From Adineta vaga (Eukaryota; Animalia; Rotifera): 64,000 bases of DNA. The stretch spans positions 2,852,001 to 2,916,000 of the forward strand of contig CP075494.1 in NCBI GenBank assembly GCA_021613535.1, written 5' to 3'. Shown one piece after another: positions 117 to 25,016 of this stretch; within the stretch, counting starts at the first letter, position 1; the number at the start of each line of letters is the position of its first letter. Made by a program: the position numbers and the translations under genes. A model generated the notes under the pieces. It did no database searches. It saw nothing but the letters and a program-made list of their open reading frames with translations, and was not told the origin of the DNA.

Positions 117-363
117 CAGGGTGAGGGTGTGGGTGTCAGACGGATGTAGTACTCACAACGATCTCTCTAGTAAAAGGTTATGTACAAGCCGGTATAGGGT
201 GGATGTGGGTGTGGGTGTGAGTGAGTGTCTGCGTTTTTCTATTTACACACCCACATCCTCAATGATCGAACATACGTTGTTGATTATAAATTTGCTTAAA
301 ACATCGATGCAGAAAATAACATTTCAGCTAAATAAAATTATCTTCACCCACACCCACACCCTG
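117..363. repeat. Telomere-like inverted element, nested double copy
   Basis: CAGGGTGAGGGTGTGGGTG (117) ... CACCCACACCCACACCCTG (345-363), enclosing GGGTGGATGTGGGTGTGGGTGTGAG ... CACACCCACATCCTCAA (198-262). Confidence 0.75.
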
Positions 364-768
364 TTTACTAGTAGATAAAACAATAATCAAACAAATGAAC
401 TTGTTGATGTTTCTATCAACAGTTCAAACACAATCATGGACAAATGTTTATACATGTTATATAAAAAGAATGAATAAATAAAATTTTCTTTATGCAAATA
501 GTTGTGTAACATGATATTCCAATTCACATATTGCTTTCATCTAAACGTTTTATTGTTCTCGCTGATGTATAAAGAAAAGTGAATCTTTGGACGTATACAG
601 AGTTTAATTGATCAAGATTAATTTATAAGAAGATGAAAACAAGAAAAAGAACTACAATTGCCTGTAATAAACTGTGATTATAAAATAAAAGTAAAAAAAT
701 CATAAAGTGCGCTTTGGATTATACTCTTGATATCTGATTCTTATCGAACGATTACATTTAGAAAAAAA

Positions 769-3700
769 ATGTCCGAACAAAAGGCAAATGGTAAATCGGT
801 ACATATTTCTGCATCCAAAATATCTCCGGCAATTGAAAGTAAATATCGATTAGACTTTTTTTAGATTCATTCTCGATTCTTTAGATCCACAACGAGTGTC
901 ATGTCGATTAGATTGGGCTGAATCATCTTGGATAAGATGGATACAAATACCATTGTTTCTATGGCTATCACCCATTCTCTCTCTGGCTAATAAACGTTCT
1001 CTTGTTGAAAATGATCTTAATGATCTTTCTCTCAATGATAAATGTGGAATTATATTAAACAGAGTAAATCAATATAATTCTAAATGGCCTGGTGCATGGA
1101 AAATATTTCGAGGAATATTCTATAAAGATTTTCTGACAAGTATCTTACTGGTTTTTCCACTCACAATGGCTCGTATATCACAACCATTACTTATTCGTCA
1201 GTTGACTATTTATATTAAAGATCAATCAGGATTACCTGTTTATTCTGGTTATTTATTTGCTATTGCTCTTTACATTGCTGTACTCGTACAAGCAACTTGT
1301 CAACAACAGATTATGTTTCGAAATGTACGTATAGGAACTCGAATTCGTAATGTATTCTCATCCGTTATCTATCAGCGCTTATTAAATATCAATACGGCAG
1401 CTCTTCATAAGACGACTGCTGCTCAGACGATTAATTTAGTATCAAATGATGCAAATAAATTTGCAGAATTAAGTATTTTTATTCATGCTTTAATAATGGT
1501 ACCTTTGGAAGTCTTTGCAACATTTGGTCTTTTATGGTGGAACATTGGTCTACCAACTTTATTCGGTTATGCAGTATTAATTTCAATAATACCAATACAG
1601 GCCATGTTCAGTCGACTGTTCGGTAAATATAGAAAAGGTACAATGTCATACACGGATAAACGTGTTCAAACGATCAATGAACTTGTTAATGGATGTCAAA
1701 TTATAAAAATGTACAATTGGGAAAAAGCTATGGAGCAACGAGTATGCGAAACACGTCGATTGGAACTTTCAAATATTCGAAAAGCGAGTAGTTTGAGGGC
1801 TCTTAATGTTGCTATATCTTTTGTAACAATACCTTTAGTTTCTCTTGCTACATTTGGAGGTAGTTGGCTTATCAAACGTACTTTACTACCAGAGAATATT
1901 TTTTCAACATTAGCTTTCTTTTCAATGGTTCGAGTTCCATTAACAATTACAATGCCATATTTCATTGAAAAATTTAGTGAAGCTCGAATTTCTGCAAGAA
2001 GAATTGATCAATTTATGCAACTCGATATGTTATTGAATAAACGTGAAATAACAAAAAATGAAAATGAAGAACATGTGATCATCATGGAAGATGCATCATT
2101 CTCTTGGAAAGATAATCCTTCATTATTTTCACTTAATCTTAAAATTAAAAAAGGTAATTTAGTTGGAATAAAAGGTACTATTGGTTCTGGTAAATCAACT
2201 TTACTCTCTGCTATACTCGGTGAAATTAATCTTATAAGTGGAAAATTACAACTTGCAACGAATTCAATTTCTTATGCTCCACAATCGGCATGGATATTTG
2301 CTGATACTATTCGAAGTAATATTCTTCTTGGCAAACCAATGAATGAAGAACGATATAAAAATGTCATAAAAGCATGTTGTCTCGATGTTGATCTGGAAAA
2401 TTTTGGTGAAATTGGTGATTTATTAATGATTGGTGATAAAGGTGTGAATTTAAGGTAACAGTCAAGTATGTCCTTGCAAAAATGTCCCTGGCTTTTGATC
2501 CTCGGACAAAAGATCCTCTTCTAAAGTGTCCTTTCGAAAAATATTTTTCATCTTCATGAAATCTTGAGGGTGGGGGTGGATGAAGAAGATATACTCACAC
2601 CCACAACATCGATCGACTCAAAAGCAATACAATTACTGTGCAAGAATTATTGGGAAAAATTTCATTTTTTGTTCCTAATGATTAGTTTAATGAAATTTTA
2701 AACGCTCTTCTAGATTATATTTCATAATTTATACTTTTACCTATAGTAACACTATCGACTTTTTTTTTAGTGAGAGAATATTTTTGAAAGGACATTTTTG
2801 CGAAAGACATTTTACATGAGGACTTTTTGTCCGAGGACCAAAAGCCAAGGACAATCTTGAAAGGACATTCTTGACTGTTTTCGAATTTAAGTGGTGGACA
2901 AAAAGCTCGAATATCACTTGCTCGTGCACTCTATGCTGACGCGGACTTATATTTACTTGATGATCCACTTGCTGCTGTTGATCCTAAAGTAGCAAAAAGT
3001 ATTTTTGATCAATCTATTGGTCCAAAAAGTTTCCTTCGTGGAAAAACTCGAATATTGGTAACACATCAAACACACTTCTTAGTTGAATCTGATCAAATGT
3101 TTGTATTAACTCATGGTCATCTTGATGAATTACAAATTGAACAACAACCCGAAACTGACTCATCCGAGGAATCATCAGAAACAGATTCATCTAGTGGAAA
3201 AGAAACAGATTTCGTACTTAATACTAATATAACAGATATGAATTCGATTGTAAAAAATGAAACATCAATTGAAGGTTCGATCAATTGGAAAATTTGGTTA
3301 AAATTATTTACTGCACCACCATTACGTTGGTTTGGGTTTTTATTTATGATTATTCTAATGTTGGGTAATGAAGCTTTGTATGATTTTGCAAATAGTTGGC
3401 TCGCTTCCTGGTCGAGTAAAGATGAAATTGAACAACGATCATCATTCTATATCTATGTTTATCTTGGAGTAATTATTTCTACATTTATTGTTGCATTGAC
3501 TCGAGTCAGCTATATTATTTATATTATGTTATGTGGTTCAACTTATTTCCATAATCGAATGCTAAAAGGTATTTTGTACACGTCCTTACGTTTCTTTGAA
3601 AATAATCCAAGTGGACGAATATTAAATCGAGCAAGTAAAGATCAACAGGTAGTAGATGAATCCTTACCTTTAGCTTTAATTGATAGTATGCAATATTTAT

Positions 3701-5035
3701 TAATGACACTTGGTTCTATTATAATTATTGGAATAACGAATCCATGGGTACTTCTTATCCTCATTCCTTTAGTTCCAACTATTTTGTGGCTTCGACGATT
3801 TTATATACGTGCAAGTCGACAATTGAAACGACTTGAAAGTGTAACTAGAAGTCCTATTTTTACATTGTTTTCAACTTCATTAGATGGACTTACTAGTATT
3901 CGTGCTTTTGGTGTTCAAAATGATTTTTTGAAAATGTTTATCGAAAGAATTGATGCAAATTCACGAGCATCATTCATTCTTTCTGCTGCTGCACATTGGT
4001 TCGGTTTACGACTTGATCTTACAGCATCATTACTCACATTAGTTACCTCGATTCTTGCAGTAGCATTACGTCATCAAATTGATCCATCAACAGCAGCACT
4101 TAGTATAAGTTATTGTATTACTTTAACAGGTTTATTTCAATGGGGAATACGACAATCAGCAGAAGCAGAAAATTATATGACTAGTGCGGAACGTATTTAT
4201 GAATATGGTCAATTAGTACCTGAAAGTCATCAACATAATAATAATAATAATAATAATAATATTCTTATTCAACCAGACAAAAATTGGCCTTCTCATGGAA
4301 TTATCGAATTCAAAGATTATACTTGTCGTTATAGATCAGAACTTGATCCTGTACTAAAAAATCTCAATCTAAAGATTGATTCTCAAGAAAAGATTGGAGT
4401 TATTGGTCGAACAGGTTTGTATTAATTCAACTAAAGATATATGATATATTAAATGTGATTTAGGTGCTGGAAAATCATCACTCATCCAAGCTCTCTTTCG
4501 ATTAGTCGATCAATCAGCAATTCATGGAAGTATACTCATCGATGGCATTGATATTGGATGTCTTTCACTCGATTATCTTCGTTCTCATCTTAGTGTTATT
4601 CCACAAATGCCCATTCTCTTCTGTGGTACTCTACGATACAATATAGATCCATTCGAACAATTCTCCGATGAAGAATGTTTAGCAGTTCTTGAAGCTGTTC
4701 AACTGAAAAAATTAGTTCGAAATCATTCTGATGGACTGCATCTTTTGGTAGCTGAATCAGGAACAAATTTGAGTGCTGGTGAACGTCAATTGATTTGTGT
4801 CGCTCGTGCCATTTTAAAGAGAAGCAAAATATTGTTGATTGATGAAGCTACTGCACATGTCGATCATGCTACTGATACGATGATTCAAGAAGTAATTGCA
4901 GACAAATTTCGTGATCGTACAATACTGACGATTGCACATCGTTTGAATACTATTGCGAATAGTGATCGAATTCTTATGTTACAACAAGGAGAAATTGCTT
5001 TTTTTGATGTGCCTAAAAATATAAACTTGATGTAA
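769..5035 (+). CDS. ABCC4/MRP4-like ABC exporter (about 1244 aa); exons 769-838, 885-2454, 2892-4414, 4464-5035
   Basis: TMD1-NBD1-TMD2-NBD2 layout. Walker A GTIGSGKS and GRTGAGKS, signatures LSGGQ (split by an intron) and LSAGE, Walker B YLLDD and LLIDEAT. GT-AG introns join the ORFs in frame (3735 nt total). Confidence 0.93.
2455..2882. mobile_element. Non-autonomous Mutator-like TIR element (MITE) forming intron 2 of the ABCC gene
   Basis: Imperfect ~90-100 bp TIRs (AACAGTCAAGTATGTCC...CCTCGGACAAAA at 2457-2545; TTTTGTCCGAGG...GGACATTCTTGACTGTT at 2777-2879), flanked by the 9-bp direct repeat GAATTTAAG at 2446-2454 and 2883-2891. Confidence 0.88.
2561..2605. repeat. Telomere-like inverted element
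   Basis: ATCTTGAGGGTGGGGGTGGA...ACTCACACCCACA, inside the intron-forming MITE. Confidence 0.7.
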
Positions 5036-6243
5036 TGTTATTTCGAATTGTATTGTAGGATCAATTAAGTAACTATATAGTTTATATGCTTAGTTTAATA
5101 TAAAATAATGAATAAAAATGGATGATAAGATCGGAATAAAGGTTGTACTTTTATGTAGTTTATATGTTGCTTTCAGTCCTAACGATTTTTATCCATTTTC
5201 GATTTTTTCTCTCCCTCTCTCTTTTATAAAGTATTGGAGTAGATCGTGTTTCGTGGCAGAGAATCTATCTAGTTTTGCCACGATAGGAAATAAGTGGTTT
5301 TGTTTTACAGCATCTGCCAAATATGTTTGCAGACGGAAAATATTCATATGAATCAAGAGATTTTGAGGGAGAAAGCGAGAGTATAAGAGACATTTTTGGG
5401 ACGGAAATCCCAAGCCTCCTTCATCTAACCGGAGGGCTTGTCTATCACTGGTCATCCACACCCTTAATATTAATTAAACTAACGTTCATCAAGAGGTTCA
5501 GTAGTAAATAGTCAAGTAATTGGAAATAACAGTTGCGACGCGATTCACTAAATATTATTTCGAATCTTCCTGAAATGGGATTGTACAGGTTAAATGAATT
5601 CACATAACAGTTCTTCATAATAAAATAATTCATATTTCAGTCATGGATATGATCGAGATTAAGATGATGATGATGATATAACGAAAGAATTTCTTTTCAT
5701 TTATTTCATTGGATGAAATGGATATTACTATACTGATTGTTTTCGCAAATGATAATTTAAGTTATTATTTTGAAGAATAAAGTTAATTTCCACTTAAACA
5801 GCAATTGTAAGATCAAGAAAAGTGAGCTCCAAGTTTGGAGTTTACGAATGTCTAGTTTTTCATCGCAGGTTCTATCTTATAACTTGAACTCTTCATTTCT
5901 GACTCCTCAAATAGATGTTTTCGTTTTATTTTTCTTTATAGATAAGTAACTAATAGAGACGAGTGTTTTTTTCTGTCACTTTGTCTACTCCGGATGTATT
6001 TTATTGAGAGAATGTGCCAAATAGCAAAAGAAAAACGATCATTTTCACTTATTCATTCATTCATTCATTCATTGAAATCGTCTTATAGAATCTAAAATAT
6101 ATAAGGATATTTTATGTTGATAAATTAATACTATAGAAATCAAACAATTAAAATGTTGTGTCAAATCCGATTGTCCTGAAATCCATTAGATTTTCTATTT
6201 CTTTAAAAAAAATAGATTTGTTTCGGATTAATGCCGAATAGAT

Positions 6244-24944: not shown

Positions 24945-25016
24945 TGCCTCCACGCAGGATCGAACTGCGGACCTCCAGTTTACTAGACTGGCGCTCTACC
25001 ACTGAGCCATAGAGGC
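24945..25016 (-). tRNA. tRNA-Thr(AGT)
   Basis: GCCTCTATGGCTCAGTGGTAGAGCGCCAGTCTAGTAAACTGGAGGTCCGCAGTTCGATCCTGCGTGGAGGCA: 72-nt cloverleaf, anticodon AGT, A and B boxes, downstream T8 Pol III terminator. Confidence 0.96.

Follow-up and report, generated by a model that had tools for sequence, protein, structure and literature searches.

Where new spliceosomal introns come from is a long-standing question, and the best-supported route is the insertion of a transposon with co-option of a splice site from the duplicated target; most of its documented cases come from protists, fungi and a few marine animals that have large introner families. Exonic DNA transposons are also spliced from pre-mRNA, as in the Ds and Mu alleles of maize and with Tc1 in C. 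elegans. Bdelloid rotifers, for their part, carry a famously low transposon load. Introners are DNA-transposon-derived introns of Micromonas, Aureococcus, dinoflagellates and others (review PMC11282704; surveys PMC9860276 and PMC12130899), in which the element supplies the donor and the target-site duplication (TSD) is co-opted for the 3' AG (PMC11282704), and singular introns of transposon origin are a known category as well (PMC11282704). Rotifers are mentioned neither in Gozashti et al. 2022 nor in its 2025 sequel, and the sole bdelloid claim that we found, for an "introner-like" sequence in fed4 of Adineta steineri (PMC10597677), rests on generic intron features. Here we describe a 64-kb stretch of chromosome C5 of Adineta vaga (contig CP075494.1, positions 2,852,001 to 2,916,000; AV20 assembly, PMC8494291), referred to below as the window, in which a miniature inverted-repeat transposable element (MITE) of the Mutator type lies within the signature motif of an ABCC4-like transporter gene and, together with one copy of its target, has exactly the form of a GT-AG intron. 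We put the probability that this element is really spliced and the gene still functional, which would make it a single transposon-derived intron, at about 0.6.

The host gene (769-5035, + strand) encodes a full ABC transporter in four exons, with two transmembrane domains (TMD) and two nucleotide-binding domains (NBD) in the order TMD-NBD-TMD-NBD, a Walker A motif and the LSGGQ signature, as in full transporters of the ABCC (MRP/CFTR) family, and its homologues bear ABCC4 names. DNA homology with the orthologues begins at 603, upstream of the ATG. The first ABC_tran domain is split in the Pfam matches, its first third closing exon 2 and its last part (profile 111-136) opening exon 3. The features of the gene and of the element, which is a Mutator-like element (MULE) with terminal inverted repeats (TIRs), are as follows.

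769-838, + strand: exon 1, with the ATG at 769, read from the sequence; the N-terminus agrees with the orthologue models (MSKKQ.../MSEQ...).
839-884, + strand: native intron 1, 46 nt, GTAAAT...TTTAG; the frame continues into PQRVSCRLDW.
885-2454, + strand: exon 2, coding for TMD1 and the beginning of NBD1 up to ...GDKGVNL plus AG; open frame, Pfam ABC_membrane and ABC_tran (profile 3-52), match to the deposited model I4U23_022628 (P0056).
2446-2454, + strand: left copy of the TSD, GAATTTAAG (or 8 bp, 2446-2453, if G2454 is base 1 of the TIR), read from the sequence; the site is single in the orthologues.
2455-2891, + strand: candidate GT-AG intron, 437 nt, phase 2 in the Ser codon AG/T, equal to the MITE plus one target copy; supported by the exon translations and by I4U23_022628, which reads GVNLSGGQ across it.
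2455-2882, no strand: non-autonomous MULE (the MITE), 428 nt (429 if it starts at 2454), recognised by its TIRs, its family copies and its lack of coding capacity.
2457-2542, no strand: left TIR arm, with subterminal AATGTCC repeats and the donor GT (2455-2456) in the arm tip; inverted-repeat search and family alignment.
2561-2613, no strand: nested palindromic micro-unit of ~53 bp with telomere-like GGGTGT runs; at least 8 other copies in unrelated flanks.
2623-2685, + strand: remnant of a transposase C-terminus, SNTITVQELLGKISFFVPND followed by a stop; its translation compared with the open reading frame (ORF) of a C1 element (L022; ...NNTITVQELLEKLSFFVLNN), with a DNA match.
2794-2879, no strand: right TIR arm, whose tip CTTGACTGTTTTC gives a branch-point-like TTGAC and a pyrimidine run; inverted-repeat search and family alignment.
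2883-2891, + strand: right copy of the target duplication, GAATTTAAG, its last two bases AG being the acceptor; read from the sequence.
2892-4414, + strand: exon 3, which completes NBD1 (SGGQ..., Walker B) and continues through the linker and TMD2 into the beginning of NBD2; Pfam matches to ABC_membrane and to ABC_tran (profile 111-136), 100% identical to P0056.
4415-4463, + strand: native intron 3, 49 nt, GTTTGT...TTTAG; read from the sequence and the deposited model.
4464-5035, + strand: exon 4, the remainder of NBD2 to the stop codon; deposited protein model.

The MITE sits in the LSGGQ signature codons of NBD1, where the sequence reads ...GGT GTG AAT TTA AG/gtaacagtcaag...cttgactgttttcgaatttaag/T GGT GGA CAA. 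The candidate intron begins gtaacagtc... on the donor side and ends ...gactgttttcgaatttaag on the acceptor side, with GT at 2455-2456 and AG at 2890-2891, and its removal would restore the pre-insertion codons exactly. Indeed, the translation of exon 2 ends ...MIGDKGVNL, exon 3 translated from the duplicated AG gives SGGQKARISLARAL..., and the join GVNL/SGGQ equals the orthologue protein at this site; read through unspliced, the frame runs into a stop right after GVNLR. Three proposals of the initial annotation are borne out by the TIR arms, the TSD copies and the exon translations: that the whole 437-nt intron consists of a TIR element plus one target copy, that the acceptor AG is the end of the duplicated target, and that the excision geometry restores GVNLSGGQ without change. 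The two TIR arms, of 86 nt each, are 83% complementary, and for the intron RNA a single long stem is predicted (-150 kcal/mol; z = -9.1 relative to shuffled sequences), which juxtaposes the splice sites.

It had also been proposed that the donor GT forms the first two bases of the left TIR and that the TSD is 9 bp long. The origin of the donor in the TIR tip stands, and the boundary allows a second reading: because the first base is G and the second G or A in every aligned family terminus (GGTAAC, GAATAC, GGTATC, GAAAAC), G2454 may be base 1 of the TIR and the target duplication 8 bp (GAATTTAA) instead of 9. The 9-bp reading agrees with the 9-bp TSDs of the autonomous relatives described below. 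The two readings look the same in the sequence, and the predicted seamless excision is identical under both. Since the tip GGTA recurs at 4 of the ~15 family termini, the donor GT is intrinsic to the element, with no later mutation involved, and the presence of related termini at ~15 other places in the genome indicates that the element is not a chance structure. Dating of the insertion by the identity of the TSD copies (9/9) or by TIR mismatches was considered and rejected as uninformative.

The relatives of the gene carry the empty site. A search of the genome with the NBD1 part of exon 2 (genome searches were DNA and pattern searches of the 100.8-Mb, six-chromosome A. vaga assembly) recovered an ohnologue on C3 (C3:930k, 80% identity) together with other ABCC paralogues, and in every one an open frame longer than 1,000 codons spans the insertion site; the motif ...N(L/V)S(G/E)GQ... 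is uninterrupted in the six readable copies, namely the ohnologue and five paralogues. Four orthologous bdelloid loci with 80-87% DNA identity also have the empty site: one from an ENA metagenome (L038), one labelled Rotaria sp. Silwood1 (L039/L040), one labelled R. sordida (L084) and one further locus from ENA (L085). When each of them is aligned to the two flanks, the two alignments share exactly the 8 nt of the target. The metagenome contig has a frame broken in several places and was thus used for the empty site only and left out of the codon analyses. Both A. vaga copies of the target carry the synonymous TTA, where all relatives have TTG, as is expected of a true duplication. Since the ohnologue, the five paralogues and the four orthologous loci have no intron at this site, and since the element and one target copy cover all 437 nt and leave no place for an earlier intron, the candidate intron is, on this comparison, identical with the element and a gain of the A. 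vaga lineage rather than an old intron. The initial annotation had called it a de novo gain and pointed to intronless LSGGQ sites in paralogues and orthologues as the check; the gain of the segment is upheld, and no unrelated intron occupies the position in any of these loci.

Two further observations concern the orthologues. The closest ones to the A. vaga gene (P0013 and P0024, 84-87% amino acid identity) are labelled Rotaria sp. Silwood1 and R. sordida, and the best matches in Adineta steineri and A. ricciae reach only ~76-80%; either the orthologue was lost in the Adineta relatives or sample labels or contents are mixed. The L085 orthologue (ENA ERZ26165376 contig, 1495-5187) is a single frame of 1,231 codons that lacks the short NBD2 intron (window 4415-4463), which is present in A. 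vaga, its ohnologue, L039 and L084, so that this native intron differs in presence and absence among bdelloid orthologues.

The MITE belongs to a small family of ~10-15 related copies or fragments in the genome, which share the terminus consensus G-R-N-N-ACAGTCAAGAATGTCC and the subterminal AATGTCC repeats. Its closest relative, a truncated copy at C4:10049402, is 87% identical, with values of 70-80% for all the others. The internal part of the MITE corresponds to the 3' end of a C1 element of 2.4 kb (L022), whose TSD matches at 7/8 positions; no Pfam matches were obtained with the ORF pieces of this element, which is degenerate, and the family was therefore classified through a second type of copy. 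This type is represented by L082 (C5:16355133-16357522; L082:1633-4022) and L083 (C3; L083:1559-3869), two related copies of ~2.39 kb that are 92% identical and have unrelated flanks. In the L082 copy, five exons separated by four short GT-AG introns add up to exactly 506 codons, with a FLYWCH zinc finger (PF04500, 26.6 bits, above the cutoff of 23.6) and a match to the MULE domain (PF10551, E = 0.0012) that, at 19.6 bits, is below the cutoff of 27.6 and comes from one 54-aa exon covering profile 31-81, the domain being split by introns and searched exon by exon. The copy is flanked by a perfect 9-bp TSD, CACAAGAAT; the TSD of L083 matches at 7/9 positions. The L082 copy appears to be intact and is the likely autonomous relative of the MITE family; its type differs from the MITE's own autonomous type by ~25% in the TIRs and 41% in protein. 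The MITE shares its TIR tips with the autonomous copies, retains the internal transposase remnant and has no coding capacity, and its long TIRs and TSD of 8 or 9 bp are those of non-autonomous Mutator/MULE elements, whose TSDs are 8-11 bp. By these features it is a deletion derivative of a FLYWCH-MULE family, and the earlier call of a Mutator-type MITE gains support from the FLYWCH finger, the partial MULE domain and the 9-bp TSDs of the relatives.

The family searches also gave observations that stand apart from the intron. At L054/L045 (C1:16105438-16105921; ACTGTATTC/GGAATACAGT), a head-to-head junction joins two termini of this family, which suggests nested or tandem insertions, and several other family copies have no recognisable TSDs. 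The ~53-bp micro-unit nested in the MITE has the structure ATCTTGAGGGTGGGTGTGG-ATGAAGAAGATATAC-TCACACCCACACCCTCAAGAT, with arms made of GGGTGT runs; it recurs at window 120-365 and in L010, L013, L015, L017-L021 and L002, and one copy occupies the corresponding position in the closest relative of the MITE. Possible identities of the unit are a tiny foldback mobile element and a hairpin related to the telomere repeat.

In order to judge whether the element is removed from the transcript, we considered the deposited gene model, the constraint on the reading frame and the splice signals. The deposited model I4U23_022628 (1,110 aa) reads ...GDKGVNLSGGQKARI..., that is, it uses the junction 2454^2892 exactly. 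The spliced frame of ~1,230 codons contains no stop and is under constraint, with ratios of nonsynonymous to synonymous rates (dN/dS) of 0.08-0.15 against three orthologues and 36 nonsynonymous (N) to 63 synonymous (S) changes on the A. vaga branch (polarised with the ohnologue), compared with a neutral expectation of ~3:1. The signals are plausible for an intron: the donor, AAG/GTAACA, is a good one, a branch-point-like TTGAC lies ~18 nt before the acceptor and is followed by TGTTTTC, and there is no other AG between. Two lines of inquiry gave little. Protein searches for transcript-derived or allelic sequences spanning the junction, with the 1,032-aa frame of the ohnologue and with the first 320 aa of exon 3 returned only the deposited model at 95% identity or more, which is uninformative, since the collection seemingly holds no other A. 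vaga data. Expression values by gene number (supplements of PMC10809525) were rejected, as the FUN_ numbers of that study differ from the I4U23_ numbers and FUN_011005 is a serine hydrolase.

Several points weigh against functional splicing. The deposited model is a prediction and no independent proof, because it contains errors at other places and because its making combined ab initio predictors with transcripts on a repeat-masked genome: it is truncated at the N-terminus, starting 93 residues into exon 2 (Met 94), and it removes 51 nt (window 1789-1839; 17 residues, SSLRALNVAISFVTIPLV) as an in-frame intron that all orthologue models keep, probably a model error or else an exitron; in the AV20 annotation, repeats were masked first and GeneMark, Augustus and PASA were then combined (PMC8494291). 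The acceptor is AAG, whereas all six native introns that we read, a small sample (two in the host gene and four in L082), end in TAG; a heuristic survey of acceptor usage in the window yielded only 14 ORF pairs, too few to judge the frequency of AAG. The 5' splice site lies inside a very stable stem. N/S is about twice as high on the A. vaga branch as in the orthologue clade (Fisher p = 0.049), a hint of some relaxation, and loss of the gene might be tolerated, given an ohnologue of 80% identity and several paralogues. Because the assembly is haploid (allelic divergence 1.7%; PMC8494291), the insertion could be heterozygous or hemizygous. Finally, an element that moves by cut and paste leaves no young sister copy behind, and the insertion therefore cannot be dated by the age of the family.

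These points lead to the best-surviving alternative, namely a recent, possibly heterozygous, disruptive insertion in which the MITE would be unspliced or spliced inefficiently or imprecisely, the ABCC allele would be null or hypomorphic with its stops not yet accumulated, and the seamless geometry would be a coincidence. Such a coincidence is expected, by our estimate, in ~3% of random exonic insertions of this family (1/2 for the orientation times ~0.07 for an AG-ending target); a few chance cases would then be found in a genome with many exonic insertions, and a scan for this geometry selects them. The atypical acceptor, the mildly raised N/S ratio and the redundancy of the gene fit this explanation, and the intact-looking L082 copy could still supply transposase. 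The time available for it is short, however. As 5.4% of random substitutions in the coding sequence would create a stop, the finding of none in ~3,700 nt limits any unspliced history to less than ~1.5% neutral divergence. A recent mobilisation, in turn, is not obviously possible: no family member is closer than 87% to the MITE, the autonomous type from which it derives (the C1 element) is degenerate, and the intact type is the one that has diverged in both TIRs and protein. We therefore treat disruption as a serious possibility, towards which we do not lean; if the element is unspliced, the finding is that of a fresh gene disruption only.

The initial annotation had further suggested that the element might be one of an introner family, which would leave many near-identical copies as introns in other genes of the lineage. 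A donor tip GGTA at 4 of ~15 termini and a conserved tip that also carries the branch-point-like TTGAC would make the family pre-adapted in principle, but the suggestion was not upheld. The genome searches found a small and old family, with pairwise identities of at most 87%, and in the flank-ORF test long open frames lay on both sides of a MITE copy in the ABCC4-like gene only, the one copy in an exon; the only other flank that raised suspicion belongs to a 25-nt TIR fragment (L044), which lies next to a non-genic open stretch. A. vaga was also scored 0 for introner elements by Gozashti et al. 2022 (PMC9860276, Suppl. Table 4). Membership in an active introner family is thus very improbable, and the candidate probably represents an isolated de novo intron made by one transposon, with no proliferating family behind it. 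Least credible of all is an older, ordinary intron into which the MITE inserted later, for which it can be said only that transposons often sit in introns, and against which stand the absence of any residual intron sequence and the intronless sites of the relatives described above.

Taken together these data suggest the following course of events for a functional transposon-derived intron. A miniature non-autonomous FLYWCH-MULE of the Mutator superfamily inserted into the LSGGQ exon of NBD1 of the ABCC4-like gene, in the A. vaga lineage after its split from the sampled bdelloid orthologues, and duplicated the target GAATTTAA(G). The element tip G/GTAACAGTC would then serve as the donor and the AG at the end of the duplicated target as the acceptor, turning 2455-2891 into a GT-AG intron, with the opposite TIR tip adding the branch-point-like TTGAC and the pyrimidine run TGTTTTC, 18 nt before the AG. 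The 86-nt TIRs could pair in the pre-mRNA and bring both splice sites together, and we infer that removal by the spliceosome is efficient enough to keep the gene functional. A bolder extension is that the MITE is a functional lineage-specific intron, that its MULE family is structurally pre-adapted through the G/GTAAC donor tip and the tip with TTGAC and pyrimidines, and that bdelloids undergo ongoing, sporadic conversion of transposons into introns without an introner burst; we consider this combination rather unlikely as a whole. If true, any insertion of such a family into an AG-ending target would give a clean intron, and bdelloid rotifers would offer a metazoan system for sporadic and ongoing transposon-to-intron conversion.

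Elsewhere in the 64-kb window, a tRNA gene at 24945-25016 (- strand) was the sole Rfam match (RF00005, 67.7 bits).

The value of the locus lies in its being a single, fully resolved case, in which the pre-insertion state is kept in the ohnologue and the orthologues, the family and its autonomous relatives are identified and an essential catalytic motif was hit; this makes it, in a laboratory animal with public RNA-seq data, a clean natural experiment on the immediate conversion of one ordinary MITE insertion into an intron. If the element is spliced, it would be, to our knowledge, the first documented transposon-made intron in bdelloid rotifers.

In comparison with known systems, the locus resembles introners in that a short non-autonomous TIR element with a TSD provides the 5' GT and the target provides the 3' AG, the excision would be seamless and the segment is absent in orthologues. 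Unlike introners, which number from 5 to more than 2,000 similar intron copies per genome, it is one exonic copy of a small, old family, and its splicing is predicted. As in the maize Ds and Mu alleles and C. elegans Tc1, a single exonic transposon would be removed via splice sites in or next to its termini; those cases mostly use cryptic sites and yield imprecise, partly functional mRNAs, whereas the geometry in A. vaga would restore the wild-type codons exactly. With the MITE-derived introns of Fritillaria borealis and the non-conventional, TIR-paired introns of euglenids (PMC11282704) the locus shares an intron that is a MITE with a TIR and a TSD and a pairing of TIRs that can draw the intron ends together, but those introns have non-canonical ends and are numerous, whereas the A. 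vaga candidate is canonical GT-AG and single. With the FLYWCH-type MULEs of animals the family shares long TIRs with subterminal repeats, a TSD of 8-9 bp and apparently autonomous members with a FLYWCH finger and a putative MULE domain, the MITE keeping the TIRs and the 3' end of the transposase; it differs in that the MULE match of the relative is partial and below the Pfam cutoff and that the MITE itself codes for nothing. What is new in the A. vaga case is the host, a bdelloid rotifer, the superfamily, a FLYWCH-MULE, and the completeness with which the states before and after the insertion can be read.

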